DNA from: Lepidodermella squamata
Lineage: Eukaryota > Animalia > Gastrotricha
Reading direction: 5' to 3'
NCBI GenBank assembly: GCA_047495785.1
Contig: JBLDXI010000029.1
Coordinates: 248,001-312,000, forward strand
DNA: 64,000 bases
This document shows positions 1,051 to 58,945 of this stretch, in pieces (position 1 is the stretch's first letter; every line of letters starts with the position of its first letter). A program made the position numbers and the translations under genes. A model generated the notes under the pieces. That model was not told the DNA's origin and did not search any database. It saw nothing but the letters and a program-made list of their open reading frames with translations.

Positions 1051-2668
1051 TTAGTTTCCGCAAATACTAGGGAAATTCCCAGCGCATCCCGTTTTATCGG
1101 CGCCACGATCTATCAGCATTTGCGCTGTGCTAATCTGACCATAACGAACTGCATACAGCAACGCAGTCCAACCGTTGTTCGGGTTCTTAGCATCGATATT
1201 CGATCCGCGATCCAGCAGGAGCATAGCAATCTCGGTGTTGCCTTTATAACTCGCTGTCATCAGGGGTGTCATGCCCTGGCCATCGGAAGTGTCTGGTTGC
1301 GCGCCTTTATCAAGCAGTAGCCGCACTGATTCGAGCCATTTAGTGCCATTTGACACGCCGGATGCAAGGTGAAGGGGGGTGAAGTCACCGGTTGGAGTTC
1401 GCGACTGAACGCCCACTTGAGCATCGAGTAAGTATCGAATTGTGACGTAATGACCATCAACACAAGCCTGCCACAATTCCTGATATTCAAATTATGAATC
1501 TCTAAGAGAATTGACTAGAAAGGTAACTAACACCGGCGTTGATTCTACCACTATCTGGTGGAACCGCTATGGTTCCGCAAGACTGCTCGTCTGATGAATC
1601 GCCGCAATCGTCGGCTTCGTCGCATTGCCGGCTGTAAGCGATACAAAGGCCAGACTTCGGACTTCCATCTGGGCATGTGAACGATTGACACCCAGGCGTT
1701 GTGTTAACAGCTTGCGTTGTAGCAACTGTGGTGGTCCTGGTAGTTGTGGGAATAACAGCTGGACGGGTAAAAGTAAATCGAACAGTCGATCGAGTTGAAC
1801 TGCTAACAACATCTTGAAAAGGGGCTTTAACGTAGAAATTCAACCCGAAGTGCTGAACTTACTAACTACAGCTTGGCGTTGGCACAAGCCAGCCTGAGTC
1901 CAAGTCCCATCGCTGCGGCAGAAAACGTTCGGCTGCCCGACTAATTGAAAGCCGTCATTACAAGTAATCGCCCTAGTCAATCCGTTTGTTCCGGCCACTT
2001 CAGCGCTGGCTCCATTCGAGATTGTTGGCAGGGTCTGGCACGCTAGACAACAATTAAAATTATGTTCTTCCCGTGCGTTGACCAGTGAGAGGTTAACAGC
2101 AATGAGTGCGAAACTCTTGGCAACGAGCCAAAAAGTATATTTCCAACGCTCCACGTTCACATTATTCAATTATCCGACAGATGATGGGGAATACATAATA
2201 ATTAATGTAATTATTCTTGGGAATGATAATCTTACTCGATGTTCGACTGCAGGTCCCAGGCTGGGTCCACTGGCCAGTCGATTGAACGCAGGTGATTCTA
2301 GGCAGTCCACTCAGCCTTGCCCCAGGGTTGCACTTCAAATCCCTGGTAACACCCCACCCGTTGTCTGTGCCTTCGAAATAGCCATTGGCGACAAAAGGCG
2401 GCGGTCCACACCCGCCCTCGACTTTTAGCTCGCAGGTGCCAGGCTGGGTCCAGCGGCCATTGCAGCAGAAAATCGCATTGACGCCTTTGATCTGATAGCC
2501 AGTGCGACATTGAACCAGCCGGAGGACCCCAGTGTTGACTGGGCCCATGTAATAGTCGCCATTCGTAAGCTGAGGCAGCGCCCCGCAGTTATATAGCCCA
2601 TCGCTAGTTGTCTGTGCCTCTACAACGGCGATGTTCAGCGATATGATAATAGCAGCAAGCAACAACAT
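1051..2668 (-). CDS. Gene A: secreted 3xCCP(sushi) - Thr-rich linker - LDLa - ankyrin-repeat protein
   Basis: Hand-spliced exons 2668-2236, 2043-1863, 1812-1532, 1479-1051 with GT-AG junctions. Signal peptide MLLLAAIIISLNIAVVEA; CCP motifs C..P...NG...C..Gy.l.G.....C...G.WTQPG.C; LDLa CIAYSRQCDEADDCGDSSDEQSC; ANK motifs TPLH/TPLM/TALL; ends DKTGCAGNFPSICGN. Confidence 0.85.
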
Positions 2669-3232
2669 TCTTCCAGAAAATTAAAGACTTCTGTTCCCTT
2701 TGAGCTAATATCATTCAGCTTTTATCAATAGGATGGGCCACAAAGAGGCATAAAGTGGCACTTCAATAGGTAGACGTATTGTAACATTTTTTTATCCTTT
2801 TCAGACCCTAATTCGGATTACTCAAGCTTTCAACCTATCTTAGCCTTCAACCCAATTAAAATATTGCAAAAAATGGAAAGGAGATCAAAAGAAATATTTA
2901 CTCATACGGCAAATTTGGGTTTTTGGAGTCGTTATTCCGAAGATCGCAGCTGTTGTATCCATCAACACCGCGTGCTTTTCAAAGTTAGCTGGGCAGCGAT
3001 TTTCAGCAGGACTCTTGAGAAATTATTATTGAATGCAAATCAAGGTTAAATTGCTAGGGGCTATGAAGATGGTGCTTCAACTGAGTCAGCACTCATGGCG
3101 CGTGGACCAAAAATGGCGCATAGCTCGACCGTTTTCCAAAGCTCAGGTTTTTATTAATCTCAAAAACAGTTGGTTTCGAGATAATACAAAGGTGATTCGA
3201 ATTCCACTTTGAATTATATACACGTGAAAGTG

Positions 3233-6200
3233 ATGAAATCGGTTCTCCGAGCGATCACTGTCGCCATGTTAATAGCTCTCGTCACCTGCGCAGATTTATC
3301 ACCGTAAGTACCGTAAATTGGGGCAAAATGGCCGCGGGAAAAAAATTACCCCCTGATTTTTTCGCATTTTTACACGTTTCAGAGGGTCCTGATTCCGATT
3401 TTATAGGAAGCTCATTTTGCCCCAGGTTTGGGGCAAATTGGACAGGTGTTTTGGGGCTAATTGGCCACCCTTATCCTTATAATGGGTTTTTAATATTTAG
3501 TGATTGTGAGGGTTGAATGGTCGAGTGGTTGTGATGCGTCCATCAGAACTTGAGTGATCTGATGAGCGACGGTTCGAATCCTCATAAAGTAGCATTTTTT
3601 TGCTCCGCATTTAATTTTTTTAATTTTTTTGTTTTAATTGTCCATTTTGATAATTTTTAATTAGTTTCTCCGTTTTTTCTGAGAGTTTTATTGCTGAGCA
3701 ACTTTTAAACGTCTTCCGAACAAAAAAATGTCCGGCATACGTGATGTTAGTGGAATAATTAAAATGGATAATTAATAACAAAATTAAAAAAATTAAATGC
3801 GGAGCAAAAAATGCTACTTTATGAGGATTCGAACCGTCGTTCATCAGATCACTCAAGTTCTGATGGACGCATCACAACCACTCGACCATTCAACCCTCAC
3901 AATCACTAAATATTAAAAACCCATTATAAGGATAAGGGTGGCCAATTAGCCCCCATCATTGAGTTTTCCATTGGGTAATTTGGCCACAATCACCTAGCCA
4001 TACCTGTGCATCGCCTGGGGTCGCGGTTTTTTTTGCTGTCATCTTCGACGAAAATGGTCGAAGGAAAAAAATTCATCTGAACATCAAACCTCGTGATTGG
4101 CTCCAGGTAATTCAATTTAGAGGGGTCATTTTTACCTCCCTAAACTCACCTCTGTGCAACAACATGCTGTGACCTCATTTCGGGACATACGTGGCTGAAA
4201 ATTTGCAGGCTTGTAGGAGGCTTGTTGATAATCGTCCCCGTAAAGTTTTGTGAAGTTTTACCTTGTAGTTTTTGAGCTATCGATAAAAATGTGAAAACCT
4301 CAATTTTTGGCCAATTAGCCCCAAAGGTTCATTTTGCCCCAAATGACGGTAGGATACGTTATTGAATTATTGTTTGCAGTTTATTTTTCTTCATTTTTGT
4401 TACTTCAACTTTGACTTTGAAAATATCTGGTTAATTACCTCGATCTCTTGCCTCAAATGCTGTTGCCAGTAAACAGTAAACCTGAAATCTGAACATAACA
4501 CTGAATATAGGTGTTATCTAATTTCTAACTAATTATAAAATCACAGAAAATTGGAAGTATTTTATTAGTGGACACTGAAACCTATTGAACCGTCGACAGT
4601 AGGTTTACTATCAAGAGGCTGTCTACTATCCATACTATCTGAGCTTCTTATATACTCAACAGCTGAAGAGATGATGTCGAAATTCATTTCATTTTCTGGC
4701 TAAAAATATCAATTTTTACTCTCTCATCTCAGTAATCCAAATTATGACCGGCGTCATTCTCTTCGCGGCTCTTCCGACTCCGAGAGATCTTTCATCTCGC
4801 AATCCGCCGCCGAAGGACAACAGCTGAGCGACGAAGCTGATCTGATTGCGACTGAATCAAAAATTATTTCAAAAAGAGCCTATGAAAAGGTGAAGTTATT
4901 AATGTTTTAATCGGCAAATTTAAAATAAGAAGTTTCTTAGGCTGAATACATGCGTTGTCTCGATGAAGATGGTTCCATTTACTGCGCCCCGGTGGAAAGT
5001 GGATGCACCAAAGGCATTCAAGCTGCGCCTGTGAACTTCTTGTTTCCGAACGAAGCCGATTGTTTGGCCGCGAAAAAGCGTTTCTTCACTGTGAAGGCTG
5101 ATAAGCCTCTGACTTGGTTCGAAGCTAACGCCCTTTGCAGTTCAAAATCTGGCCACCTGGCGACCATCAAGACTCCAGCTGAGCAAGCCGCGCTCAGAAA
5201 GCTTCTCGAAGACGAATCTATCGCCAATGCTTGGGTTGGACTTCGGAAAAATGCCAACAACCGATTAGCCTGGATCGACGGTACGCCCCTTGAAGCCTTC
5301 GACATGCAATGGGGACCTCCTGAGCCGACTGGTGAGGGCGATTGCGGCAATTACATACTCTTCAAAGCTGAGGACGAATACACTGCTGGCGCCTACCTGA
5401 ACGATGACGATTGCCTGGTCCCGGCGCCTGCGGGAGTTTGCGAGACTTTCAGCCATTTTACTGATAAGAAGTCATCCGAGGTAAGATACTTATCTGACTT
5501 CCTGCTACACGTGTTTGTAGCTTGATATGGGGAAATAAGATCGAATTGTCTCTAGTATCTAGTATGATATCACTAGTATCGCATAAATCAGTAATTCTTT
5601 TTGAGAGCTCTTCGTCTGATTTTTAGAGAGGCTATTCGCGGTGTGTGGCTTTCCTCAACACAGGCGAGGTGACGTGCCGTCTGGCCTCTGAGGGTTGCCT
5701 GGCCACCGAGCTGGAATTGCCCTCTGAAACTGTCTTCTTAACACGACTCGCTTGCGAAAATACTCAGAAGCGCATGTTTGTCATCGAACTGCCCAAGGCC
5801 ATGGCTTGGCACGAAGCGAACAGCATGTGCTCTAGACAAGCAGCCCAGCTCGCTACGATCAAATCAGAAGCAGACCACGCGGCATTGCGTGAGCTGCTAC
5901 CGGCTGAGGCGAACCACTGGTATTGGATCGGCATGACAATGGACGCGTCAAGGAAGTTCGCTTGGGTCGACGGTACGCCTCTGCGAGCATTTGCAAAGCA
6001 GTGGGGCCCGGATGAGCCGAATGGAGATGGGGAATGCGGCAACTATTACCCGTTCCCGGCTGGTTATCATCTAAACGATGCTCCTTGCTCCGTCGACGGC
6101 CACTATGCTGTTTGTGAAACTTTCGAACCTGTAAGTTGTTTCCTCGAAGCCCGCGTTATTTATTTATATGTTTCTAACCCTAGAAACCGCATGTTTCGAT

Positions 6201-6969
6201 TGATCTGAACAAGGAATTGGCACAGGCCTGCATGGACGGCGAAGTGGCGAAGGTGCGACAACTCGTAGCCGATATCGACTCTGCGACGCGAGGCAAATTC
6301 GACCCGAACATGCGATATCGGCGCAAAATCTCAGCTTGCGAATGGGAAGTGAAAAACGGAACGTTGTTGCACCTGGTTACTCAGTGCGGTAACAAGCCGG
6401 AGGATCGGTTCGAAATCGTCCGCCTGCTGGTCGATCGAGGCGCGCATGTCAGTTACGATGAAAACATGTTCGCTCACATGCCTTTGCACTTGGCGGCGGG
6501 AAACGGGCTTTTGAAGGTTGTTCGACTGTTGATCGTGAAAGGAGCGGCAATCGACTGCAAAACGACTGACCTTCGGACTCCGCTGATGTTTGCTGCCGAA
6601 AAGGGACACTTCGAAGTCGTGAAATTGCTGCTCGATCGCGGTGCTGATATTGATAGCCGGAGCGACAAGGCGCTTACAGCTCTTTTGCCAGCGGTGGCCA
6701 ACGGCCACGCAGAAGTTGCAAAGCTACTTCTGAATCGCGGCGCAGACCCCAATGTTGCTAGCACCAGTTCAGGGAAAACGCCGCTAGACTGGGCTGTTGA
6801 GCAGAAGCAAAAAGATTTAGTCGCACTGCTTAAAACCAACGGCGGAAAATGTAAGAAAAATGCGTGCCAAGGTGCAATGGAAGCTCCGAATTCCTGTTTT
6901 AATTTGTCAATTTCACCTTCTCTTACTGATTCTGAATCATTCATTCAACCTTCAACGCAACAGTTGTAA
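3233..6969 (+). CDS. Gene B: secreted prepro - 2xC-type lectin - ankyrin-repeat protein
   Basis: Exons 3233-3303 (MKSVLRAITVAMLIALVTCA, phase 2), 4733-4889 (pro-region ...IISKR/AYEK), 4941-5480 (CTL, WVGL, EPT), 5627-6130 (CTL, WIGM, EPN), 6184-6969 (ANK). AATAAA near 7018. The 3' end after CKKNAC is less certain. Confidence 0.85.
3311..4349. mobile_element. Non-autonomous DNA transposon (TA-flanked, CCGT termini, Tc1/mariner-pogo-like) in intron 1 of gene B
   Basis: TA|CCGTAAATTGGGGCAAAATG ... CATTTTGCCCCAAATGACGG|TA: 20-bp TIR with 2 mismatches and TA on both sides. Subterminal GGGGCAAA/TTTTGCCCC and GGGGCTAATTGGCCA repeats. No transposase ORF. Confidence 0.8.
3453..3953. repeat. ~175-bp near-perfect inverted repeat inside the transposon; each arm carries a tRNA-like Pol III unit
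   Basis: Arms ~3453-3627 and ~3780-3953 are reverse complements. A-box TGGTCGAGTGG at 3518-3528, B-box GGTTCGAATCC at 3571-3581, oligo-T at 3595-3601. Confidence 0.9.
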
Positions 6970-7767: not shown

Positions 7768-9754
7768 ATGATTAGGCTTGCAGTATTACTAACCTTTGCT
7801 GCGTTTTGTTCCACTTCAACTGGGCATAACTCTCCAAACAGAAATTTGTGAGTGCTCAACTGTTTCAGTCGCAACATGCAATCCTAATTAAGCTTTTCAT
7901 AATGATGTAAATTTGAAAATTTCTCGTTTGACAGGTATCGAAAATATGGCGAAGATATTCCCGGGCCACGCTTCGATTCAGCACGCTTCGGGGTCAATCG
8001 ATTTTCATCTAAAATTACAACTGAAATGTTGATTGGTGCTGGAAAACCAAGATTGTCTCGGATGAACAGCGGGCAAATTTCTCCTCGGGAGGCAGAGGCT
8101 AATACACCGCGGAAGATGAAACGCCGTGATGTTAGTGCAGACGAATTTGTATCCGCTGCTGGTGAACAGGTAAGGTTCTTGTCCTCGTAATGGCTTTTAA
8201 CTACGCTGATTCATGCGCAACAAAATCAGGTTTCTATAGCAACAAAATTATATATGCTTTGATAACCTTGCATAACACTGCATTCTATCTCATAGGTGGC
8301 GTACCAGCGATGCGTTGCATCCAATGGGAATGTTTTCTGTCATCCAGAGGCTGCCGATTGCGGCGATCTTTCAAGTGCTCTCCCCGGATCTTACCCTAGC
8401 AAACAGGCGTGCCTCACAGCTAAAAAGCGGTTCTTCGTTATTCGGCAAACGCCTGACTTGCGTCTGAATTGGGAAATAGCTGACGCTCTTTGCATGATCG
8501 AATCTGGAGTTTTGGCCTCTATCGTGACGCCTGAAGAACAGGCTGAACTTCGAAAACTTCTCGCCGCTGAGTCAATCATTTCCGCTTGGGTCGGTTTCTC
8601 GAAGGACGCGACGCAGAACTTCCGCTGGGGCGATGGTACGGCGTATGAGCCCTTCGTCGATCAGTGGGGCCCAAATGAGCCGAACGGCGCTGGTAATTGC
8701 GGCTCTTACAGCATATTCCCGGCTAGGGGCGACAAGCCGATGGGTCTCTACCTCAATGACGTTGATTGCAATGCAGCTATCGGAGCGGCAGTGTGCCAGA
8801 CTTATATATTGGAACCGAGACCTACACCGAAAATGGTAATCACATAAGCTGCCCTATTTAAGAGAAGTTTCTATGAAACTCGTATCAAACTTGAAATTTG
8901 ATTGACAAGGGTCTTATCGATTCTTAACAGTATTCTTATCATCTTTAGGTCGAAGCCCAAATCGTTAATCAGCCCATCGATGAAGTTGCTGCCAGCGGGG
9001 ACAAGGTACAATTAAAGTACATGGACAATTTACCTTTCAGCATTCATCAATTAAGCTTAATAAGCTGTTAATGAAAAACAACTGTTTTACGTTTCAGGCC
9101 GCAGACACTGCAGTTAATCAGCGTCTCGGTGAAGCTGTGGTCAGTGGTAATGTTGAAGAAGTTCGACGTCTCTTAGCCTCTCCGGATGTCGACGTAAAAT
9201 GGCGCGACAACCGCACTCTTGACAACGGAGCAGTGGTCGGTGGAACGGCGCTGCACAGAGCCGTGGCCAACTCAGCCCCGGTCGAAATCGTGAAGGCTCT
9301 CATTGAGGCAGGCTTCGATGTCAACGACGAAGAGCCAGCCAACGGTTGCATGCCCTTGCACTTGTCTGCTTCTCAGAAGACGAACGAAACAATGCTTTTA
9401 CTAATCAAATCAGGCGCAGTAGTCGACGCTGTTTGTCGAGGAAACGAAAAGACAGCGCTCATCTTGGCGGTACGTGCTGGTAGGCTGGATATGGTGAGGG
9501 CTCTTCTTAACCGTGGCGCAGAAATCGACAAGGCTACGACTACCAAAGGCTATTCAGCATTGCACTATGCGGCGAAGGAAGGCACTCTAAGCGTTGTCAA
9601 GGAGCTAGTTCGCCGCGGAGCTAACATCAACTTGAGGTCGAAGAAAAACAAGACACCACTAATGATGGCGGTTAAATATGGCCACCGATCAATTGCAACC
9701 TACCTCGTCAGCCGTGGTGCAGATGAAACGGGCTGTACGGACGATGCATGTTGA
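7768..9754 (+). CDS. Gene C: secreted prepro - C-type lectin - ankyrin-repeat protein
   Basis: Exons 7768-7847 (MIRLAVLLTFAAFCSTSTG, phase 2), 7935-8169 (pro-region ...RKMKRR/DVS), 8296-8835 (CTL, EPN), ~8949-9005 (linker), 9098-9754 (ANK, ends DETGCTDDAC*). Confidence 0.85.
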
Positions 9755-10561: not shown

Positions 10562-12876
10562 ATGAAGACCGGAAAATTCGCTCGAAGAGCAATTCAATTC
10601 GCCTTGTTATTTGGTGTGTTGTCGCGTGAACTCGCGGCGTCAAGTCAGCATGAGTGAGCTATTTACCTTGGCGAGATATTGCTTATTCTGCTCTTCTTTT
10701 ATTTTAATCAGCGATCAGCACAGCGAACATTCCCTCCACAACCCGTCTCATTCCGAGACTTCTGCAACCCAAGAGCAACCTATCAATGGCCCAAAGTTGA
10801 GCGACACAGCGGTTCGTGACACTGACTGAGATTTACAAATCATTTTTCCATCATTTTTCACAGGTCAATTCAAAGCAACGCCGAGATGTCAGCAATCCAA
10901 AATCGACAGGGACGAGAGCTGCTGGGACGGTATCAAATCAACCAATTGAGTGATCTTTTCTTAAATTCGCAATTTTAGACTGCCTTCACGCGATGCTTGG
11001 ACAAAGATGGCTTCCCTTACTGTGCATCTGTTGCTATTGGTTGCAACTTGCGAGCTTTTCCGGCAGGTTACTCGTATCCGACCAAGCAAGCTTGCCTAAC
11101 GGCTAAGAAGCGACTTTTCACGGTGAAAGCGGATGATCGGCGGCTGACCTGGTTTGAAGCTAATGCCCTCTGCACTGGTCAATCTGGCCACCTGGTAACC
11201 GTCAAAACAGCTACGGAGCAAACCAATTTTCGTAAACTCCTCGCCTCTGAATCGATCCCTTATGCATGGGTTGGACTCCGGAAAGACGCTACCAATAAAT
11301 TCGCCTGGACTGACGGAACGCCATTTGAAGCTTTCGACATGCAATGGGGGCCTCCCGAGCCGAACGGGGACGGAGAATGCGCAGATTACATCTCTTACAA
11401 AGCTAAGGAGGGATACCCTGCGGGACTTTACTTGAATGATTTAGATTGTCTTGTCCCGGCAGCAGCTGGCGTTTGCGAGACGTTCATGCCCCGCAGTCCG
11501 ATGTCCAACAAGGTAAAGAAAATTCAGATCTGTGTCATCTACAATATGTCATTTCCGACTTCGTTGTTCCCTTTTTAGAAAGGCTATCTACGATGCGTAG
11601 CGATACTCAACAAAGGCGAGGTCACGTGTCGGCTTGCTTCCGATGGCTGCAATGAGGACGAGCAAGCAAATCCTCCTCGCTACGCCTATGCTTCTCGAAT
11701 CTCATGCGAAACTGCGCCGAAATATATGTTTGTCGTCGAACTGCCCAAGGCTTTGACGTGGCACGATGCTAGCAGCATTTGCGCAGGGAAGTCGGGTCAG
11801 CTAGCTACGATCAAAACCGAAGCGGACCACGCCGCGCTGATGGATTTGATACCGGCCGGCTCGAACCAGTTCTACTGGGTCGGCCTGACGATGGACGCGA
11901 CGCGGAAGTTTACTTGGGTCGACGGTGCGCCCTTCACGCCTTTCGATAAGCAATGGGCGCACAACCAGCCGAGTGGTGATGGCGAGTGTGCAAACTACAT
12001 TCCTTTCGACGAACAGAGAGGCTATCCGGCTGGCTTTTACCTGAACGATGCAGCGTGCTCTGCCTATGCCTACTGGGCAGTCTGCGAAAGCTACGTCCCC
12101 GTGAGTTTTCAGCGCATTACATTTTATTCAGTACGAAGTGAATCTCCCAGTCTCCTTTCAATATTTTCAAAACAATTCCTGTATTTTTATTCTCCCTCTA
12201 GTAACATGTCCATTAATGTCAATTTCAAGCAGAGTTTCTAAAGTCTAAAGAAATATTCTTTTTTGTTCTGCTTGTGAACGCTTAGTCGCCGAATGCTGCA
12301 CTTGCGATGTACAAACAGTTGGGGCATGCGTGCGCTGACGCCGATTTATCAAAGGTTGTGGAACTCGTCGATGATATCGAAACGGCATCCGGCGGAAAAT
12401 TCGACCCGGAATGGCGTGACCCAGCCGAGTACAGCTCAGATAGTTGCTATGGAAAAGTTCTCAATGGCACGTTGTTGCACCGCGTCGCCCATTGCAAAGG
12501 CAACGAAGACCAGCGCATAGAAATCGCCAACTTGCTGCTAGATCATGACGCGAACATCAACAGCAAAGAAAAAACCTGGGGCTACACGGCCTTGTACCTG
12601 GCTACGGCTAATAACATGGTGGAACTGGCGCAGCTGTTGGTCCTGAGGGGAGCAGAGGTTGACAGTAAATTGAGCGACGGCTGGACGCCTTTGTTTGGCG
12701 CGGCGTTAAATGGCCACGCCGCAGTCGCCCGTCTGTTACTGGATCATGGTGCAGAAATCAACGTAGTTGGCGACGATGGCAACACGCCACTCGACTACGC
12801 AGTTCGTTCCAATCATGCCGAGGTCACTAAGCTGCTCAAATCTCGTGGTGGTCAGTGCCGCGCGCTAGAGTGCTGA
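10562..12876 (+). CDS. Gene D: secreted prepro - 2xC-type lectin - ankyrin-repeat protein (paralog of B)
   Basis: Exons 10562-10653 (MKTGKFARRAIQFALLFGVLS.., phase 2), ~10712-10811, 10864-10929 (KQRR/DVS), ~10979-11512 (CTL, EPN), ~11579-12100 (CTL, QPS), ~12286-12876 (ANK, ends GGQCRALEC*). Confidence 0.85.
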
Positions 12877-19600: not shown

Positions 19601-20141
19601 GGTCGTAGCGAATGTATTGATTGTAAAGTTTGTTCAGTTTGTTTTGAGCCTCATCTCGTGCGCGATCGGGGTTGCCAATTTGCGCCAGAGAATCGTAGTC
19701 ATAACTCGGAGCAATCGAATGTTCGTCAGCCTCGGAATCGATTTTGCCCCTAGTAGAATTTCACGAGATTTGAATTAAAACATAATGTGTAAGGGAAATG
19801 TATCGGATTTTAGGAACCCATTTTAATGGTATCTACGTTATCTACACAATGTACTTATGTTCGAAAAAATTCCTATTTGATATGATTTAATCAGTTTTTT
19901 AGAGTGAAAAAGATAATTCATTAGCCCCATGAATTCTATCTCCCCCATAGATGAAGTAGAAAATGGCGTAAATAAAATTAAAAACTGTTTAACCAAATCG
20001 CACTGCCATAAAAAAATTATATATTATTAATTAATCCACTCACGGTACTGCGGCGTTCGCTAGGGCTGACTGACTTGTGATCGCCAACAATACAAATACA
20101 GCTTGCCAGAAGACATAGGTCCATCGATTTTGTTTTCTCAT
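13666..20141 (-). CDS. Gene E: large secreted ANK - ANK - 4xCCP - multi-ANK protein
   Basis: Signal exon 20141-20044 (MRKQNRWTYVFWQAVFVLLAITSQSALA, phase 2). ANK exons 19749-18707 and 17815-17132. CCP exons ~17080-16713, ~16655-16483, ~16333-16131. ANK exons ~16084-15050, ~14775-14348, ~14260-13666 (ends GGECKKESC*). Colinear with gene N. Confidence 0.85.
18299..18327. repeat. (AAAT)n microsatellite in an intron of gene E
   Basis: About 7 tandem AAAT units. Confidence 0.9.
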
Positions 20142-44267: not shown

Positions 44268-44339
44268 TCCCTGATGGTCTAGTGGTTAGGATTCCGCGCT
44301 TTCACCGCGGCGGCCCGGGTTCGATTCCAAGTCAGGGAA
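44268..44339 (+). tRNA. tRNA-Glu(TTC), T-stem damaged (possible pseudogene)
   Basis: TCCCTGATGGTCTAGTGGTTAGGATTCCGCGCTTTCACCGCGGCGGCCCGGGTTCGATTCCAAGTCAGGGAA. The T-stem CCGGG/CCAAG has two mismatches. Confidence 0.8.
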
Positions 44340-44936: not shown

Positions 44937-47900
44937 TCAACCAACAATTTGCGTGTTCAAGTGCTGGCGGATCACATTCGCGACATCGTAACGGTTCGCC
45001 GCGACAGCCAAATCCAAAGCCGTTAGCCCGCCTCGATTCCGCAGTGAGGTGTTAGCAAGATTGTCCAGCAGCACCTTCACAGTAGCGAGATGGCCTGCTC
45101 GAGCGGCGTAGTGTAGCGCTGTTTCCGATTCGAAATCGGCCACATTGACAAAGGCTCTGCCTTCGATGAGCCGGCGGACGTTCTCAGTCAGCCCCAAACG
45201 AGCAGCCTGCATTAGGGCAACTCGGCCAACTCCACCCGGCTCCCTAGCGTTGACATCAACCCCTCGCTCCAGAAGCAACTGAACTGTATTTGGGTTGTCT
45301 CTTGCAGCGGCTAGATCCAGAGGTCGAACGCCAAAGTTGCCTTCAAGAGCGCTGACGTTAGCCCCGGAGTCTATCAGTAGTTTAACGAGTTCTGTCGGGC
45401 AGGTGTTGATGACAGCCCGATGCAAAGCGGTGGCGTTGCGGATGGGCCAGTTGTCAGTTTGACGAGCGTCTCGCCAGTCGATGCTGACGCGGCGTGAAGC
45501 GATGAGACGGCGCACTTCCGGAGTATCGCATACAGCCGCTGCTTCGCCGAGGCGTTGATTGAGGAGAACAGCTGGTAGCTATCAAAATTAATAAAATTTT
45601 GAAACAGTATTTTAGATTTTAGCCCTATATTTATCGAGCTGAACCTTAAGCTAGTGTACATAGCAATTTTCATGCCAGAACTGCAAGACTGAGCACACTT
45701 TTTTAAGCGCTGATTTAAACGCTGAGGATTGTACTTGCATATAGTTCACAAGGTTCGATGACAATAAAAAGCTAGAATACCCTTTTCATTTTAGTGACAG
45801 TATGACTTTTCGTGATCTATTTACAAGTTATGGCTAAGTTAGAAATTCCAGAGAAAACTCACCGTGTAAAGCTCGAGCAGATTAACCAATGAAGTTTTCT
45901 TCTGACTTTTAGCCAAATCCATCGCTGTTTTTCCAGTCCTAAGCTTCGCATTCGCATTCGCACCACGCTCGAGCAGCACTTTCGCCGCAGATTCGGAACC
46001 CTTGTAAGCCGCTATCATCAACGGCGTGACGCCCTGATTGTTTTTCGCATCTATAACTGCTCCATGATCAAGCAGCGACTGAACAACGTCAGCTCTGTCT
46101 TCCGTCGCAGCGAAATGTAGCGCCGTAGCACCGCCTTTGCTCATTTCCTCGAGTTTTGCGCCCTTGCTCAGCAAAAGTTTGACATTCTCAATGAGTCCTT
46201 GACTTGCAGCCCACATTAAAGCCGTACTCTCGTCTTTCCTGTTTAATTTAGCGTCAACCAAGGCGCCTCTGTCCAACAAGAGCCGAACCGTTGCTGGGTT
46301 AGACCTCGAAGCAGCAAGAATCAAAGGCGTTGCTCCAATTTTCAATTCGCTGGCGTTGATATCCGCGCCATGGTCGAGGAGAAGAGCGATTACTTCTGTT
46401 GGCGCAGTGTTTGCGACGGCTCGGTGGAGCGCTGTCGCATTTTGCAGGGTGCCGTTGTCGGTCACGAGCTGGTTGGCCCAGTTGACATCGGTGAGCTTGC
46501 TGCCTAAAAGACGGCGAACTTCGGCGACGTCGCCCTTAGCGGCCGCTTCGTTTAGAAGCTCGCTATTCAGCAAAATTGTAGCCGAATTCTGCCCCTGAAA
46601 GATACACAACATTAACAAGACCATTTTCATTTTGTTCATCGATCCGCTAGGCAGTTCCCCGTTCCCCCGAAAATCTGGCATAGCACTTTTAGCCAATGCC
46701 CTACTTTATGAAGAAATCAGTTCCAGTTGTAAATTGCTCATCCGCTGGAATGTTTTAGTTTGGCTCGTTTCACCATGCTAATTCTTAATTCTAACCATAA
46801 TACTAAGCCTGATTCTGCAATTTGAATACATCGGGTCTTTTTAACTGGAACGGGAATTTAAACTGGGCCAAATTGTTAATTACTGCCCGAATCGATTTTT
46901 ACGTTAAATGCCAAAGTTGGAAATCAAAAATGGAACAAAAATGCTACTAACTGCTTATCCATCCTATAAGCTTTCAAAATTACCTTGAAATCATCGACAG
47001 ACGGTACTGAGCCCATTGCGGTGGGACCAATTGCTTCGTTCGATGAATCGGTGACGGCTGAGCTTGTCTTTACCTGCTTCACACATTTACCAACACTTGG
47101 ATGCCACGTTGAGCCGATGCGGCAAACAGAACCTGAAGATCCAGCCGCAATTTGATAGTCATCATTGCATTTAACAAGCAAGGCTGAGTAGGTCGGCGTA
47201 AAATCGCTCGTGATCACTTTGCCATCAAAAGGATTAATTGCAACTCCATTTTCGATATTAGGAACAGCGCATTTTCCATCTAGTAAAGTTAATACAAATA
47301 ATTTAATCTGAAAGGGGAAGAGCGTTATTCATGCCTCCGTTTGTGGCCAATTTGAGGTGGTAGTTCAGGCTAGCGACTTCGATGGCGCTCATGCCTTGGG
47401 GATCCAACAGCGTCAGATTTGCCCCTGAGTTGCTAAGAGCCTTAACACAGTCCGCTTTTGCTGAGTAAGCCGAGAAATGGAGTAAAGGCCCCGATTTCGA
47501 AGCATCAGCCAAATCGTAGTGGCATAGTGCCGTATTAACAATAGCTCTCACATCTTTTCTGAGGCTTAGCAGCTGTCTCAGAAATTCGCAATTGCCTTTT
47601 CGAATCGCATAGCACATCGGCGTTTCGTTGTTTTCATCCAAAGCTGTTGCGTCGAACCTCAGAATTGTCAATGGATTGGCAAGAATCGCCAGCATATTCT
47701 GTTCAGCAATTACGTGCCAAGTTGTCTTCACTCCACGCTTCACAGTTCGGTCGAGATCTGCAACTTCGTTTTTCGACGGTGATTTTTCGATGAAAAGATC
47801 GATGAGTTTTTGATTGCCACTTTCAACCGCGGCTTGAAACGGGTGCTTATCGTTCAAGTCTCTCGCGTTCAGATCAGCTCCTGATTCGAGCAATTTTCGA

Positions 47901-48672
47901 GCGATGTCGACCGATTTGAAAGATTTCGACCTTGCAGCGTAGTAAATCGGAGTCTGTCCAGCTTTCGTTCTGGCGTTTACTTCAGCTGAATCGCGAAGAA
48001 GTCGCTCGATGATTCGGAGACTGCCAGCCATAGCGGCAAGATGCAGCGGCCGTTCGCCGTAAACATTTTCAGCGTCGACGTCGCAGCCGACTGTGTCGAT
48101 CAGGAAACCAGCTGTCTTGTCAGAATCGTGCAAAGCAGCGATGTGTAATGGCGTGAAGCCAGACGAGTTCCGAGCGATTTTCAAAGTCTGCAAGTCCAGA
48201 AATTGCAGCTTCAACCCGCTGAGTTGGTCTAGCTTGATCAAGTTTTGAAGATGGTCGACATTGAAGCCGCTGTTGACATGCTCGACGCGCCTTATCTCAT
48301 CAGCTGCCCGCCTGCTGCAAAGTAAGTAAATAGACAGTTGAATTTATAGAGAGAATTATATGAAACCGCGTTTTTTCGCTCGGTTGAAGCTTCGTACAAA
48401 CGTCTACTAAAACACTGAATTCAGAAGCTACTTCGCAGATAATAAATAAACGCTAAAAACGAGTTGTCATTGTAATGGCGTATTATTTCGAAATTAGTGA
48501 GCAAAATGTTGCAAATGAATTTCGAGTTATTGTAATTATAAGTGGGTATCACTGCATCAAAATGAATTTTTATATTTTGATAAGATGAACCTTACCTTCC
48601 ATAGCGAAGAGCTGATGATCTATTGGCCAGCGCAGCAAAAAATACAAGGAATACCAATATTCTAGTCATCAT
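44937..48672 (-). CDS. Gene K: secreted ANK - CCP - ANK - ANK protein
   Basis: Signal exon 48672-48596 (MMTRILVFLVFFAALANRSSA, phase 2). ANK ~48314-47335; CCP ~47279-46984; ANK ~46594-45863 and ~45570-44937. The intron after the first ANK exon appears to be GC-AG. Confidence 0.8.
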
Positions 48673-49305: not shown

Positions 49306-51935
49306 TCAGAGTAAGAGATTGACTATGTCTTCATGGCCAGCTTCTCGAGCCAGGTCCAACGCAGACTTTCCGTCCAGCTTGTGGATCGCTGTGTCAGCCT
49401 TCCGCTCCAGAAGCAGCTTCACAACATCGGTGGCGCCGTAGTAGGCCGCCGACATCAACGGAGTCACGCCTTGGTAGCCTCGCAGATTGATATCAGCGTT
49501 AGCATCCAGAAGAGCAGCTACAATTGCCGCATGGTTGCCTAGAGAAGCACGGTGAAGTGCGCCCATGCCGCTGGCGTCTCTCCAGTCCATGTCCAGGTTA
49601 CCTAGGCTGATCAGAGATTGAACCTCAGCGAGATCGCCATGGCTAGCAGCTGTCGCCAATTGGTGTTGCTTGGCGATAATTTCAGCGTTATCCTCTTCAG
49701 TCTTCACAGGAGCTTCATCGTTCTGAATTTCAACCTCAGGCTCCACTTGCGAGTCCACGTTAGCCATTTTCAAATTGCCAGGCAAATCGCTCGTAGTGAC
49801 ATCGCTAGCTCTCTCGCCAGCGGCGTTGTTCGTCGCCGCATCACCCGAAGCTCTTTCAACCAGCAGTTTCACAACATCGCCAGCTCCAATCTTCATCTCG
49901 TGCACAGCGTCGAACAGCGCATTCACGATGCTCGGCTTTCGGCTCAAAATCGCCTTGTCGATAGCCATGAAGGCGAATTTGTCGCGCTGTGCGAAATCTT
50001 GATTGCCGGGCGCCAGCAGACGGTCAGCGCCGTCCAACGTATCACTCGCTGCTGCGATCAGCGTCTGCGCGTTGTTACAGGTACTGCTGGGTGCGTCTTC
50101 AACGCGCGATCCACGCAACACAACTTTCGGTTCTTCCTCGGCTGCGTCGCTGAGAACCTTGAGAACACAATTCAAATTATCAATTGACATGCGACTTAAA
50201 GTTAGAGCGAAGCAATGCAATATTCAGTGCTAACACCTAACTGAAACCCAGAGGTCCTAGATTTCTTACCGGCATATCAGCGTATTTGTGGAGCAAAGCC
50301 GCAAGCTCAGTCTGTTCGTGCCGCTCGGCGAAACTGATTAGCAGATCGATGGACAGCGAGCTGAGAGCTCCTCGTTCCAGCAGCGTCTTACACACGTCAA
50401 TCGCGACGTAGAACACAGCTTCGTCGAGGGCGGTCGTGCCGTCAGGGCGCCGCAAGTTGATCTGAGCACCGGCATCCAGCAGAGCCGCGACTACGCCGGC
50501 GTTCTTACTAGTAACCGCCTTGTGAAGGGCTGTCATGCCGAGTGAATTTCGCCAGTTGACGTTCAGGCTGCCTGTGGAAAGCAGGTGCTTCACTGCGAAC
50601 AGGTCGCCGCGCTCTGAGGCAAGAACCAATTGCTCCTGAGGGGTTGGTGGCGGAGGCGGCGGTTGCGTTGTTGTGGGAGGCGCCTCAGTCGTGACCTGTT
50701 GAAAAAAATCAAAGCCATAAGAGATTAACGAGCGCCTATGAAATAGAAAATGCAGGAAACCTAGAAAAATCCGGAATACAATCACTACCTCACGAATACA
50801 GCAAATTGAATTTGCCAACAGTGACCTAAAGTGGTATGAGCGGTTTTTACGGAACTTACCATGTAAGCTTCGAGGAGACCAACCAGGCCTATATCGTAAC
50901 CCCGTCGGACTCGGGACTGCGCCTTCAATAACGCTGTCTCCCCATTGTTGGCCACGGCAAACGCATCGGCGCCCTTGTTCGTAAGAACCCAAGCGGCGCC
51001 CAAGCCGTCGTTCGAACTAGCAGCCATCAGTGGCGTCTCGCCATTCGAATCTCGCGCGTTCAAGTCAGCCCCAGCATCGATGAGAAGCTGAACGCCCTCG
51101 ACGTGATTCGCCTCAGCGGCGTAGTGCAGAGCCGTCCGACCCGCGTCGCTCTGCTCTTCGATTCCAGCCTTCCGATCAATGAGAAGCTTCATCACGAGGG
51201 CGTTCTTGTTGGCTGCAGCGATCATAAGAGCAGTTTCGCCTTTTTCTGTGGATCTCGAGTCCAAGTAAGCTCCGTAGGTCGCCAGAAGCTCCGCAACCTC
51301 GTAATTGCCCAGCGAAACAGCGACTTGTAGTGGCGTGAGGCCTTTTAGCGAATCGCGTGACTCAATATCAGCTCCAGCGTCCAGAAGGCACTTGACCAGC
51401 CTCGGCGGGGCGTTGTTGATGACCGCTCTTAGGAGAGCTGTCGCGCCTTTCAGCTGGCCGTTGTCGGTTACGCTTTCATCGCGCCAGTTGACGTCGATTT
51501 GATTTGAAAACACAAGCCGGTGAACCTCGTCCGTGTTCTTGCTGGCTGCGGCTTCGCCAAGCTCGCGGCCCATCGCGTCAAAGTCGACGGGTCGAAGCTC
51601 TGATGGATCAAAGTTCATGGCGCTTTGAAGTAAGATTTGACCAGTGGGCTTCGATTGCCTGGAAAAAGAGCAACCTGCATTATTCCATTTTAAATATAGC
51701 CCACCCCTCGTGAATTGTATACAAAGAAATTCCTAAACATTGAATAGTTATCACTATCCGCACTCATTAAATCTACTTTTTTGCGAATAATTAAAAATTT
51801 CAACGTAAAGTTGATTAATTGAAAATAAGAATTGACTTACCCGCCACCGCATTCTGTTGAAGATCGAATTAATAAAACAAGCACGACATAAAGTTGAAGC
51901 CTCGCTCCACTGATAAGGCACTGCACCGCTCCCAT
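49306..51935 (-). CDS. Gene L: secreted ankyrin-only protein with Pro/Thr linker and one degenerate cassette
   Basis: Signal exon 51935-51841 (MGAVQCLISGARLQLYVVLVLLIRSSTEC, phase 2). ANK exons 51658-50860, ~50696-50271 (VTTEAPPTTTQPPPPPP), ~50157-49306. Confidence 0.8.
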
Positions 51936-53277: not shown

Positions 53278-56200
53278 ATGACATTTCTACGATGGACCTT
53301 ACGCTTGAAGCTAGCTTTCCTGTTCATGGCGATACCCGATTGCGTCGTTTTAGCGAATGGCTCGAAAACGTAAGTGAATAAAATATATAATTCGCTTGCC
53401 AACGTTAGCCAACTTGGGAAAATGAAGATTGTTTCTCTAGAATCATCGCTTATTTCGAATGTTATTTTCTCTAGTGGGAAAATTCATGTTGAGGCTGGTG
53501 AGCACTCGCTGGCTTCGTCTTACGACTACGAATCTCTGGCGGCGAAACTTGTCACCAATGAGCCATCACGTGAGCAGGGTCAAAACAGGCTGAATAAACT
53601 CTACAATCAGCACATTCGCTACGACGTATTATCGGCAATCAAACGAGATTACCCCAATGTAAACGATTTGAAGATTGTTACAAACGCATCTGGCCATACA
53701 CCCCTTCATGTAGCAGCATTTTACAGCGCTTTGAAGACAGCTACATTTCTCGTCGATGAAGTTGGTGCCGATATCGAGGCTCGTAACAATCTTGGCGAGC
53801 AGCCAATTCACCTCGCCGCTTCAAATGGCCACCTCAAAATCATCGATTTCCTACTCGAGAAATCTGGCGACGATAAGAAGAAGCAATTTGTGAATGCCGA
53901 AACTTTGAATGGCGAAACACCTTTGCTCTACGCTGTAAAATCTCGTTCGACTCGTGCTGTTGACGTTGCGAAAAGACTTTTAGACCGAGGAGCTGATTCG
54001 AACGTCAGAGACCGCAGTGGCAGCTTTGCTTTCGAAATCGCCCTGGCAAGCAAGAACCAAGCGATGATTAAGCTGTTCTTCCCGGACGAGTCAATGTCAA
54101 GATCGAAGCAGAACGTGAAAACAACGTCGCACGTCATTGCTGAAGAGAACAAAATCGATCATTTGCTGAATAATTTTACAAAACAGTTTTTCAAGGCTGC
54201 CGCTTTGGATGAACATGGCGAGACGCCGCTATGTTACGCGATACGTAAAGGCAACTGCAACTTTTTACGGCTTTTGTTCTCAGTTCGGGAAGACACGAAA
54301 ACTTTGGCCACATCTGACACCTGTTTCTATTCGGCTGATAATCGCGATGTGAAGGCCAAGGGCGTCGTTGATCGGGGCCCACTGGTTCATCTTGCGAGTT
54401 TTCTGCGTAAAACGGAGTGTGCCAAGGTTTTGAAGGAGGCAGGGGCTGATCTTGCAGCTACTGATTCTAGAGGCCGAAATGCTGCGCATGCTATGGCTCT
54501 TCAATCCGATCAGACAATCGATAAACGTTAGTTGGATTCTCAATTTTTTTAAATTCGGCTAAAATACCATGACTTTGCTTGATCATAATTTATAAGTTCT
54601 GTTTGAACATCTTTTGGCATTTTAATCGAAAATTAACAGCTGATGTCGATGAAGAACTGATTAAAATCTTGCTCGACGAGCCGGCCGGTCTTTTCGATGG
54701 CCGCGATCATAACAACCGAACTGTGCTAGCCTTAGCCGCGGAGAAGAACACGCGAGCTTTCGTTGAGGTTCTGTTAAGAGATATCTTTTCGGAAAGCTTC
54801 AGCGACGAAGAACCGAGTAATCATGGCACGATCGCACTGCTTCACGCTATCGCTACACAGCAGGCTGAGATGGTCAAGCTGTTGCTGCCCTACAGGCGTG
54901 AAATTGCAATGTCATTGGATAGTCATGGCCGGTCTCCGTTGTTCAAAGCAGCTCGGTGCGGTGACTCTGGTTCGAAAACCATCGAAGCAATCCTGACACC
55001 CATTTCTTCCGACTCGGAGAAGCTCTCCAAGGCTTTGTCTCTGAAAGACTCGACCGGCAAAACATTGCTCATGCTGGCTGTCGATCGAGATTGCCCAGCT
55101 TTGGTCGACCTTCTTCTCAACAAATTTAACGCACCTTGCGAGGGAAGTTTTGGCAATGTTGGCATTTTCGATTGGGCTAGGCTAGCTGGGTATGAGCAAG
55201 TTTTTCAAGTTATGCAACAGTCTGGCCGGTGCGACAAACCTAATGTTAGCGTTACATCGCAGAGTTTGCGAAAATGTGTGCTAGATGAAGGCGATATGGC
55301 GCAATTCCAAAAATATCAAAGCAGTATGTTTCGAGAATCCATGAAAATTCAACTTTGAATTTTGCCTTTATTATGTATTATAGTTCAATCTTCTAAGCCG
55401 AAAAAAGTTTCCAATGGACTGATTGAATACTCCCCGAAGAGCGATGACAGCTGCTCTGATATCGGAACCATAACTTGTGACGCAGGATTTTCGCTGATTG
55501 GTCCAAGCTCGGTTAAGTATTCAATAGAAGATGGATCCTGGATGGTAGAGGGCCAATGCCTTGCGGCTTGTAGCGACGAGATTCCTTCAGTTCCCAACTC
55601 TGAGATGGCCGAGCCTGATAAGCCGTTTGTTCACGGCACAGTTGTTTCTTTCAAGTGCATGGAACCATTGGTCTTAGAAGGCCCTGCTGCTATCGTTTGC
55701 CAGAGGAATGGCACTTGGTCTCAGCCTGGCAGCTGTGTTGAATCTAATTTAGGTAGAAATTACTAGCTAAATCGAAATTTGATCTTGAATTGCTGAATTA
55801 CTATATAATATCAGACTGTGGCGAGGTTCCGGCAATTCCGAATGGTTTGGTTGATGATGGCTCAGTGACTACCCCGGGAAGCATAGTCGCAGTTTCCTGT
55901 AACGATGGCTACGAACTGCATGGAGCTGACTTCGTTGCATGCTCGAACAACGGCAGCTGGTCAAAGCCTGGAATCTGCAGCCCAAAAGGTAATAGCTCTC
56001 AAAGTTCGAAAAATGATCACACGAAAATTCTCAAGCGCTCATCAATTCCAATTGAGTCCCAGTATTTCGATTGAACCATGTGCAATTCTAAATTAGATAT
56101 TTTGAGGTCGACGAAAATTCTAGTAATTTATTCTTGAATAGGTTCATGTCTAGTTCCAGAGGTTTCGAACGGTGTTTTGCTGGACCTTCATACTGGCCAA

Positions 56201-58945
56201 GTTCTCAAAGGCCCAGCTGTTTCGCCATTCACATCTATTTACCTGAAATGCAACAGAGGCTACGAAAGCAAAAATGGTCCGCTCGGTTCAACCTGCTTTG
56301 ATAACTCAACGTGGTATCCAGATATCAACAGCTGTAACAAAAAGGTAAGTAACGTATGCGGCTCATCCTTATTTATCGTATGCCCTTGTTGTAGGATTTG
56401 GTTGCCAAGCAAACAGAGCTCATGAAAGCGATCACTGAGCAGAATATCGTCAAAGTTCGCGAGCTGCTAGAAGATAGAGATGTCAACGTAAATTGGCGTG
56501 ATCCATCAGAGCGTGGCACTTGGACTATCGTCAATGGAACGGCCCTTCACATTGCCTTGGACCTTGAAGCGCCTGTAGAACTGGTCAAAACTCTCGTCGA
56601 AGCCGGGGCTAATTTAAATGCTAAGGAGGGTAAATACGGCTCAAGAGTTCTCGAGATCGCCGCTGCGAAGACCAGCTCCCCTGAAATCGTTGCATACCTC
56701 ATCGAATCTGGGGCGAATGTCAATGGCCGTGACGAAGCTAATGAAAAAACCGCTTTGATGGCAGCAGCGGAATACGGCCACCTGGTTAAAGTAGACATTT
56801 TGGTCAAATACGGTGCTAACGTCAACGCTGTTGGTAAGGATGGTTACACGGCTCTGATGTTAGCGGTGAAGAAAGCTCACCTGGATATTGTCAAGTATTT
56901 GATCCAGAACGGAGCTGATTCCCTGATAGTGGCTGACGATGGTCAAACAGCTAGTTCCCTGGCTGGGAATAATATCGATTTTATCCAGCTTTTTACGGGT
57001 ATTTCGACAACAGAAACTCCCACGACCACTAATCGGGTATTGGACTTGGAGAAAGTCATGCGTCAACAAGCATTGAACGATGCCGCTGTTCGGGCCAGCT
57101 ATGATGAAGTGCTGCGATTGCTTGAAGGTGAAACTCTGGACCTGGAATGGCGCGATGCTACCGGATCTACTGCTCTCCACAAGGCTGTTTTTGCTGGACA
57201 GCCTGTCGTAGTAGCTGCGTTGTTGGACCACGGAGCCGAGATGAATTCTCAGCGGCTGGACGGCAAGACGCCCCTGATAATAGCAGCTGAATATGGCCAC
57301 GTGATGGTCGTGGAACTGCTCGTTAAGAAAGGAGCGGACAAGTCCGTCGCGGTTAGTGGGAACCGTGCTGTCGACATCGCCAGGCAAAAGGGTTTCACGG
57401 ATATTGTACGCATTCTTTCTGGGAACAGGGTATGCTTTAACCAATAACAGACAGCTTGAGACAGCTGAGACATAGGTATTCTTTAGAAGAGTTTTGAATT
57501 TTTTAGAAGAATTCAAATTCCTGTCAGGTTATTTTTATTGGATTCTTCATCCTTCGAAAATTACACATTTTCATTTAATATCAATACTTTCATCAATACT
57601 ACTTCAATAATTCCCAAAATATTTAATAATTGAAGTAATAAATGAATTGAACTTGTAGATCGCCTATCTCTCGACAATCGCCACTAAGCCCACCTCTACA
57701 ACTCGCACGCCAACGGTTGTGTTGCAGCGGCAATTGAACGAAGCGGCAGGCCGCGGCGATCTTGACACTGTTGGCCGCTTGTTGGAGCAAGGATCACTTG
57801 ATTTAAATTGGCGTGATCAAAACGGCGTCACAGCGGTGCATAGAGCAGCCTACACAGCGAATGCTGACATTCTCGATGCTCTCATTGCCGCTGGAGCTTC
57901 GATCAATGCGAGGGGCTCAGATGGTGCTACGCCGCTGATTGAAGCTGCTTACAGCGGCCGTGGTGACGTCGTGAAAATGCTGCTTGCTCGTGGCGCTGAT
58001 GGCAAAATCAGAAAATCGACTGGTGAAACAGCTCTGGATTTCGCGAGAAGCAAGGGATTCAGTGAAATAATCAAACTGTTGGCTCCGGTAGGTGAAACTT
58101 GGATAGTTAATATTTTAAATTCAATAAAGGATAATCGAAAGCCACTTAGATTTATATGTTAACCCTATTCGGAAAATTCGGCATGGCGATTTCACGAGAG
58201 TCTATAAGGCACAACATGTCAACGTTTTATAATGGAAACTGGACTTTTATGATGAGTTGTAGGTTGATTATTTCATGTCTCTCTCTAGGCTGGCGATCCG
58301 GAAGTCAACAGGCGTCTCGGCGAAGCCGCTGCCAGGGGCAACTCGACTAGAGTTCAGGAGCTACTCCAGACTCAAGGTATCGACCCGAAATGGCGCGACA
58401 ATCGTGTTCTCGACAACGGCAATGTCACGGGTGGAACCGCGCTTCATCGCGCCGTAGTGAACGCAGCTCCGCTCAGCATTGTGAAGGCCTTGGTTAAAGC
58501 CCGATTCAACGTGAACGAAGCTGAACTAGGCAACGGCTGCATGCCACTGCACCTGGCTGTCAGCCAGAGAACAACTAGCACATTGCTGTACCTGATTGAG
58601 ATTGGCGCAGATGTCGATGCTGTATGTTCGAAACCCGGAATAACGGCACTTATGATAGCAGCGTATAATGGAAGATCGGATATGGCCACAGCCTTACTCG
58701 ATAAATCTGCTGAAGTCGATAAGGTTTCGACGAAGGAAGGCTACACGGCTTTGCACTATGCGGCTGAGAAAGGCCAGCTGGGCGTCGTGAAGTTACTGCT
58801 GCGTCGCTCTGCGAATATTAACGCGAGATCGAGGTACAACGAGACTCCGCTCATGAGAGCTGCCGCGAATGGGCAGGCGGCTGTTGCGCGTTTCCTTATC
58901 AGGATGCAAGCCGATAAAACAGGCTGTGTTAGCAAGTACTGCTGA
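53278..58945 (+). CDS. Gene N: large secreted ANK - ANK - 4xCCP - multi-ANK protein (inverted paralog of E)
   Basis: Signal exon 53278-53369 (MTFLRWTLRLKLAFLFMAIPDCVVLA, phase 2). Exons ~53475-54526, 54640-55324, 55384-55751, 55815-55988, 56142-56344, 56395-57429, 57659-58087, 58289-58945 (ends DKTGCVSKYC*). AATAAA near 59025. Confidence 0.85.

Follow-up and report, generated by a model that had tools for sequence, protein, structure and literature searches.

Probable extracellular ankyrin-repeat proteins at a Lepidodermella squamata locus

In animals, ankyrin (ANK) repeats are regarded as intracellular, the textbook exceptions being a spider toxin and the effectors of microbes. The latrotoxins of widow spiders possess no classical signal peptide (SP), carry a specific N-terminal domain before approximately 20 ANK repeats and contain neither lectin nor CCP domains. 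Here we analyze a stretch of 64,000 nucleotides (nt) from the gastrotrich L. squamata (contig JBLDXI010000029.1 of assembly GCA_047495785.1, positions 248,001 to 312,000 of the forward strand), hereafter called the window and used for all coordinates given below, which contains a cluster of genes combining a putative SP with ANK modules and, in most members, with C-type lectin (CTL), CCP, LDLa or trypsin-like domains. Single polypeptides made of an SP, disulfide-rich modules and ANK, with no transmembrane (TM) segment, are supported by transcripts for genes A and B and by an open reading frame (ORF) for gene H, and the rest of the models are consistent with them by splice phase. That the products are secreted, TM-less proteins with extracellular ANK is well supported by the gene models and, in our opinion, very probable.

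The window has a GC content of approximately 45% and is dense in genes, with short GT-AG introns, often of 50-60 nt; the assembly from which it comes comprises 121 Mb in 151 contigs. Neither nematode SL1 nor the arthropod cuticle R&R domain, tunicate-type cellulose synthase or nematode cuticle collagen was detected, negatives of little weight because for three of the four the controls were negative as well. The genes of the cluster are the following, with domains called by Pfam scans of ORFs or exons and with X1 designating the transcript-derived run described in the next section.

Gene A, 1051..2668 (-): SP-CCP3-Thr-rich linker-LDLa-ANK, 440 amino acids (aa); exons 2668-2236, 2042-1863, 1812-1532, 1479-1051 (-); Pfam Sushi, Ldl_recept_a, Ank; X1 contig
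Gene B, 3233..6969 (+): SP-linker-CTL-CTL-ANK, 685 aa; exons 3233-3303, 4733-4889, 4941-5480, 5627-6130, 6184-6969 (+); Pfam Lectin_C twice, Ank; two X1 contigs
Gene C, 7768..9754 (+): SP-linker-CTL-ANK, 503 aa; exons 7768-7847, 7935-8169, 8296-8835, 9098-9754 (+); Pfam Lectin_C, Ank; predicted model
Gene D, 10562..12876 (+): SP-linker-CTL-CTL-ANK, 612 aa; exons 10562-10653, 10712-10811, 10979-11512, 11579-12100, 12286-12876 (+); Pfam Lectin_C twice; predicted model
Gene E, 13666..20141 (-): SP-long ANK region-3-4 CCP-four ANK modules, about 1522 aa; exons 20141-20044, 19749-18707, 17815-17132, 17039-16713, 16655-16482, 16315-16131, 16084-15050, 14775-14347, 14259-13666 (-); Pfam Ank, Sushi
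Gene H, 27728..29778 (-): SP-trypsin-like domain-CCP2-LDLa-ANK, 646 aa; exons 29778-29516, 29462-28297, 28239-27728 (-); Pfam Trypsin, Sushi, weak LDLa, Ank
Gene I, 30631..38249 (+): SP-long ANK region-CCPs-seven ANK modules, about 1988 aa, 12 exons; Pfam Sushi; predicted model
Gene K1, 46924..48672 (-): SP-ANK region-one CCP, about 465 aa; weak Sushi match of 18.6 bits; predicted model
Gene K2, 44937..46639 (-): SP directly on two ANK modules, 472 aa; exons 46639-45863, 45578-44937; Pfam Ank
Gene L, 49306..51935 (-): SP-ANK module-ANK module-acidic spacer-ANK module, 691 aa, with neither lectin nor CCP; Pfam Ank
Gene N, 53278..58945 (+): inverted paralogue of E, about 1550 aa; exons 53278-53369, 53475-54526, 54640-55323, 55384-55752, 55815-55988, 56160-56344, 56395-57405, 57659-58087, 58289-58945 (+); Pfam Sushi, Ank

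A preliminary description of this DNA, made from its letters, had counted ten genes. The cluster itself stands, but the count is better read as eleven genes in the window and one upstream of it, an ANK-module gene at a distance of 1.2-4 kb. What had been called K more probably corresponds to two genes, K1 (SP-ANK-CCP), which would then have its stop at 46924, and K2 (SP-ANK-ANK), because the signal-like start of the latter directly precedes its first ANK module within one ORF. A single gene K was considered and provisionally rejected: its internal hydrophobic stretch would be only about 10 residues long and lies right after an ATG.

The cluster can be compared with several described systems. 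Its products resemble the latrotoxins in being of animal origin, rich in ANK repeats and expected to act outside the producing cell; unlike them, they are encoded with SP exons, and Ank models are the only Pfam matches of the N-terminal exons in E and N. In oomycetes, secreted ANK proteins were reported as an expanded effector class (PMC11139960), and with these, as with the ANK effectors of intracellular bacteria and symbionts, the cluster has in common a secretion route coupled to ANK and expanded, lineage-specific families, L and K2 having the same bare SP-ANK layout. However, those effectors come from pathogens or symbionts and act inside the host cell, whereas the cluster belongs to an animal genome, contains spliceosomal introns and encodes mostly fusions with disulfide-rich domains. 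Notch-type receptors also unite extracellular modules and ANK in one protein, but their TM helix puts the ANK in the cytosol and there is no such helix in the cluster models.

Other likenesses concern the recognition domains. B, C and D resemble collectins such as MBL by their putative SP, the absence of a TM segment and the association of an EPN-type CTL with a non-lectin tail possibly recruiting partners, but in collectins the tail is a collagen-like stalk with a coiled-coil neck and the lectin is C-terminal, whereas here the tail is ANK and the lectin is N-terminal. The B, C and D models contain no Gly-X-Y run and gave no Pfam collagen match; the ANK module stands at that place. A and H recall MASP, C1r/C1s, factor I and factor B/C2, which bring together CCP, LDLa and trypsin-like domains in one secreted chain with CCP exons of phase 1-1; in contrast to complement-type proteins, no CUB, EGF, vWA or SRCR domain is seen here (the Pfam scans of exons gave no CUB or EGF match), H does not have the catalytic serine motif and ANK is appended. 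The cluster proteins fall outside the collectin and complement families, since they have neither collagen nor CUB/EGF nor an active protease. Finally, DARPins are the best superposition for the ANK module of gene C, and the modules of the cluster are self-capped, each being encoded by one exon; but they are natural, some of them possess an N-x-T sequon as well as a Cys pair at the end, and no hypervariable binding face was detected in the test described below.

Gene models and continuity of the polypeptide chain

The models were obtained gene by gene with a dynamic-programming gene finder, and the junctions were then corrected by comparison with paralogues; gene C was refined to retain the final cysteine of its CTL, and gene E was refined against its paralogue N. 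When compared with transcripts, the gene finder had mis-modelled gene A, so models built with no transcript may carry single-junction errors. Two sequencing runs were used for verification. The public run X1 is derived from transcripts, as its contigs skip GT-AG introns and its intergenic depth is zero, while X2 is a DNA run in which none of the spliced joints of X1 is present.

For gene A, one X1 contig of 564 nt covers 2331-2236, 2042-1863 and 1812-1533 and continues with 8 letters matching 1473-1480. This spliced contig confirms the introns 2043-2235 and 1813-1862 and, given one synonymous difference at 1532, is explained by a GT-AG intron at 1480-1531 with the junction ...RINAG|ELWQAC.... 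Therefore, a single RNA extends from CCP2 through CCP3, the Thr-rich linker and LDLa into the beginning of the ANK exon, and the SP and CCP1 share an exon with CCP2. For gene B, two X1 contigs end at 6130 and run directly into AAACCGCAT, the sequence found at 6184, which defines an intron of 53 nt and matches exactly the junction CETFEP|KPHVS (6130|6184) proposed in the preliminary description. For gene H no splicing is needed: the ORF 27728-28240 (-) holds the last third of LDLa (...DGSDEFNC), a linker of 20 residues and the ANK domain. Among the genes of the cluster, transcript support is limited to A and B.

An SP-like ATG start was found upstream of every gene by a scan for ATG-initiated hydrophobic starts, in line with the signal-like N-termini announced earlier. 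Their positions are:

Minus strand: A 2668, E 20141, H 29778, K1 48672, K2 46639, L 51935
Plus strand: B 3233, C 7768, D 10562, I 30631, N 53278

As judged from hydrophobicity and by eye, all eleven models have a hydrophobic h-region of 9-15 residues, followed in most of them by small residues at -3 and -1. Nine of the 11 genes have a separate signal exon which presents a GTAAGT-type donor, ends in phase 2 and is spliced in frame to the following exon, whereas A and K2 carry the signal within their first coding exon. The signal exon of gene B, also with a GTAAGT donor and an in-frame join, is located 1.4 kb upstream, across an intron bearing a repeat, which corrects the preliminary description. 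Splice phases are equally regular in the other parts of the genes: CCP exons are phase 1-1, and each ANK module corresponds to a single exon of phase 0-0 in E, I, L, N and the CTL genes. B and D have the same exon structure and the same phase string, [2,0,0,0], that of L is [2,0,0], and those of E and N are identical after mutual refinement, [2,1,1,1,1,0,0,0]. Such regularity across eleven genes is not what would be expected from chance ORFs.

The search for membrane spans considered, past residue 30 of the spliced models, the most hydrophobic windows of 19 residues. No TM-like stretch was detected in any model: the top windows are within ANK helices or within lectin or protease-like domains, and none is at or near the junction with the ANK part. 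The earlier claim that no TM segment separates the extracellular domains from ANK is in agreement with these models, as well as with the transcripts, which show that the junction introns of A and B have only 52-53 nt. No C-terminus of the eleven models has a tail of the glycosylphosphatidylinositol-anchor type. TM exons hidden in introns were also considered and rejected, since the introns contain only marginal, T-rich hydrophobic frames, one of them in an intron that is spliced out in transcripts.

The repeat in intron 1 of gene B (3313-4353) is a high-copy element of 1041 bp, whose depth in X2 is approximately 5,000-12,000 compared to about 84. The element is absent from one X2 contig, in which 3312 is followed directly by 4354, and it looks like a polymorphic transposon insertion.

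Domains and motifs

All the domain types initially recognized by eye (CCP, LDLa, CTL, trypsin and ANK) were found by Pfam on the exons to which they had been assigned. Ank, Ank_2 and related models matched the 13 ANK exons that were scanned, in which every gene is represented, with E-values from 1e-16 to 1e-65. Sushi/CCP was detected in A, E, H, I, K and N, and Lectin_C in B, C and D, with two domains each in B and D and a single one in C (E-values from 1e-11 to 1e-16). The Ldl_recept_a match of A reaches 30.8 bits, while that of H is weak (17 bits) but accompanied by a visible C-x-C...DGSDE...C pattern.

Reading of the CTL sequences showed an EPN motif followed by LND in gene C, in the second CTL of B and in the first CTL of D, whereas CTL1 of B reads EPT and CTL2 of D reads QPS. 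In gene H, the Trypsin match is confined to the first exon and the C-terminal half of the trypsin-like domain is not recognized by Pfam. Its TAAHC motif and the Asp are kept, but EKHGSP is found at the expected site of GDSGGP, and because of this replacement the term "pseudo-trypsin" used in the preliminary description is fair.

The ANK modules and their surroundings present several unusual features. In eight modules, the first repeat contains an N-x-T sequon, N-G/A-T being found instead of the usual G-x-T. In 8 of the 11 genes, a C-x(4-8)-C pair comes right after the last repeat, and in the alignment of class 2 this terminal Cys pair stands where internal modules keep an ordinary C-cap. Moreover, the linkers between modules are rich in Thr and Pro and mucin-like. 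We infer that sequons, terminal Cys pairs and mucin-like linkers may be signs of an adaptation of ANK to the secretory pathway.

Fold, evolution and selection of the ankyrin modules

The AlphaFold model of the gene C module has a pLDDT of 91.5 and a pTM of 0.87. Its best matches in the PDB are DARPins, with TM-scores of 0.8-0.86 and 32-36% identity, and the top hits of Foldseek are DARPins, gankyrin and AnkB. The ANK modules appear from this modelling to be near consensus, with ordinary concave faces.

Genes E (-) and N (+) are inverted paralogues belonging to a large inverted segmental duplication, which pairs 13666-20141 (-) with 53278-58945 (+) and also comprises the LamG/trypsin-like gene present on the two flanks. 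Identity between E and N is 82-85% in the ANK-module exons that they share and 64%-90% in the remaining segments that could be aligned, but their last exons are in different module classes, that of E being 62% identical to the last exon of D and that of N 56% identical to the last exon of C. These swapped terminal ANK exons therefore provide direct evidence of exon shuffling within the cluster. Together, these comparisons suggest that the family may have expanded through tandem and inverted duplications as well as exon shuffling, in which the cassettes exchanged were presumably the phase-2 signal exons, the phase 1-1 CCP exons and the phase 0-0 ANK exons.

Selection was estimated on the same pair, for which dN/dS ranges from 0.09 to 0.32 across six alignable segments. 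A divergent copy of the gene A ANK exon found in run X2 gives a similar picture, as its 24 coding changes comprise 22 silent and 2 replacement changes. Purifying selection of this kind implies that the genes are functional and constrained and not visibly engaged in an arms race.

The region 1005-1293, which overlaps this ANK exon, is divergent in itself: the only copy in X2 differs by about 9% of bases, compared to about 1.7% over the rest of the gene, and X1 has both forms. These two forms, both transcribed, could be old haplotypes or a very recent paralogue.

Proposed function and alternative explanations

Since a putative SP is present and no membrane span was detected in the models, the ANK repeats should fold in the lumen of the endoplasmic reticulum (ER) and act outside the cell. 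In the mechanism that we propose, each protein would begin with a cleavable SP, continue in most cases with a CTL, CCP, LDLa or dead trypsin-like domain and carry at least one self-capped ANK module, a feature that all members would share. The heads, consisting of EPN-type lectins and CCP arrays, would recognize glycans or surfaces, and the ANK would be extracellular protein-binding modules tying these heads to partners. The whole would constitute a soluble recognition and bridging set comparable to collectin- and complement-type proteins, with ANK replacing collagen or CUB. Recognition of glycans or surfaces is suggested because of the EPN lectin heads and of the complement-type CCP, LDLa and protease-like heads.

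It seems to us reasonably probable that the genes are real and expressed and that they encode soluble proteins of the secretory pathway with extracellular ANK and a recognition or bridging function. Among the possible functions, a soluble recognition or bridging role is tentatively favoured from the domain composition, and recognition of microbes or other non-self surfaces may, with similar caution, be its object; an immune or recognition role is something that we only infer. A more elaborate version would be an extracellular recognition network, complement- or agglutinin-like, in which lectin-ANK sensors, dead-protease/CCP/LDLa-ANK adaptors and giant ANK-CCP-ANK scaffolds assemble through shuffled ANK, forming a natural counterpart of DARPins. 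There, ANK would take the part played elsewhere by collagen/CUB, Ig or LRR modules, but this network is improbable.

Several observations weigh against the proposed recognition role or restrict it. With transcripts at hand for A and B, the remaining 9 of 11 models are GT-AG and phase predictions. L and K2 do not have a recognition head, and L, which in addition has no sequon and few cysteines, may behave differently from the rest. Finally, at the canonical positions of the ANK binding face, comparison of E and N showed no excess of replacements (0.15 versus 0.16, for only 8 repeats), a result that, within this small sample, speaks against a fast-diversifying immune repertoire.

Other functions would accommodate part of the same data. 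The genes could encode secreted effectors or venom-like proteins aimed at the cells of prey, of a host or of microbial eukaryotes, the lectin or CCP part docking on the target and the ANK acting on it or in it, a situation reminiscent of latrotoxins or of the ANK effectors that oomycetes and intracellular bacteria secrete. The members L and K2, reduced to SP plus ANK, would fit this scheme, as would the size of the family, its restriction to one lineage and its tandem duplications, and secreted ANK proteins were reported to form an expanded effector class in oomycetes (PMC11139960). However, the Pfam scans of exons revealed neither a toxin-type N-terminal domain nor a module for pore formation or translocation, and the selection observed is purifying instead of arms-race-like, and we consider effectors unlikely. 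Strong purifying selection suits a structural or adhesive component of extracellular matrix, mucus, egg coat or secretory granules, in which ANK would be rigid spacers or cross-linkers without a specific recognition task. The beads-on-a-string organization of E, I and N, with their Thr/Pro-rich linkers, goes in the same direction, and so does the neighbouring Ser/Thr-rich, mucin-like gene with an SP at 59125-60838. Yet intact EPN motifs and complement-type CCP and LDLa heads are more typical of recognition proteins, and the near-consensus ANK modules have ordinary concave faces, which leaves the structural role with a low probability.

An artefact of the gene models, in members with no transcript, would change the picture more deeply: the ANK exons would belong to separate transcripts, or a missed TM exon would place the ANK in the cytosol as in Notch. 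This concern comes from the nine models resting only on GT-AG and phase predictions and from the short hydrophobic reading frames present in several introns. It is refuted for A and B, whose spliced introns of 52-53 nt are too small to contain an exon, and for H by the contiguity of its ORF. Concerning the other genes, C, D, E and N have ANK exons that contain no in-frame start codon of their own and whose splice phases are those of the verified genes, while the intronic hydrophobic frames are marginal and T-rich, one of them being removed in transcripts. We consequently hold such an artefact to be very improbable.

Coming back to secreted proteins with a recognition or bridging role, this animal genome appears to have shifted ANK wholesale into the secretory pathway and to have exon-shuffled it with lectin, CCP, LDLa and protease-like modules. 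If the extracellular location is confirmed, it would mean that ANK solenoids, perhaps glycosylated and disulfide-capped, can fold in an animal ER. The family would then represent a novel class of soluble proteins with several domains, serving recognition or bridging, as well as a clean natural case of domain recruitment across the membrane boundary. Natural ANK scaffolds competent for secretion would also provide a comparison for engineered binders.

Distribution in the genome and search for relatives

The two main module types are distributed differently in the genome. The CTL exon type of 168 residues gave at least 150 scored matches and 519 candidates, and very large tandem arrays of it are observed on contigs C36 (95-265 kb), C33 (1.30-1.32 Mb) and C4, whose products are probably giant proteins with multiple CTL domains. 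The short ANK module type, for its part, occurs mainly in the present cluster and in one on contig C54. This second cluster (C54:2290864-2307271) contains approximately nine short ANK modules of the class of E_m3, N_m3 and I_m1-4.

Searches for relatives outside this species used length windows, ranked multi-repeat proteins first and covered collections that include no annotated proteome of L. squamata. The CTL exon, compared with 1.84 billion representatives, retrieved only generic multi-CTL proteins from amphioxus, echinoderms and others, with Ank in none of the 10 that were scanned. Word-indexed searches retrieved only generic ANK proteins for the ANK module of D and, with their limit in length, no relative for exon 2 of H and the CCP3 exon of N; the ESM Atlas contributed only generic ANK clusters. 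In the full-text literature, secreted ANK proteins are described for oomycetes and bacteria, and no animal family with a lectin-ANK or CCP-ANK architecture was encountered. The view expressed at the outset that no such family had been described is therefore unchanged, no relative having appeared in the sequence searches and no paper on these architectures in an animal.

Neighbouring genes

The members of the cluster are separated by unrelated genes, namely GH17-like, beta-propeller-like and transporter-like genes and three tRNAs. Those for which we have positions, together with the genes at the flanks, are:

20689-21624 (-): single-exon gene with an SP and a weak Glyco_hydro_17 match (26.3 bits for a cut-off of 28.2)
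39288-40455 (+) and 41780-43378 (+): tandem pair of paralogues for a multi-pass membrane protein, inside the ANK cluster
43971-44339 (+): tRNAs Phe-GAA, Pro-CGG and Glu-TTC in a stretch of 370 bases, with the transporter-like genes on one side and K2 on the other
59125-60838 (-): Ser/Thr-rich, mucin-like ORF of 511 aa with no Pfam match, a strong signal-peptide exon being present just upstream at 60838
62000-63937 (-): LamG/trypsin-like gene with the serine motif GDEGSP

The last gene is duplicated on both flanks of the cluster, its other copy being located at L001 8308-10000 and L003 1-488 (+).

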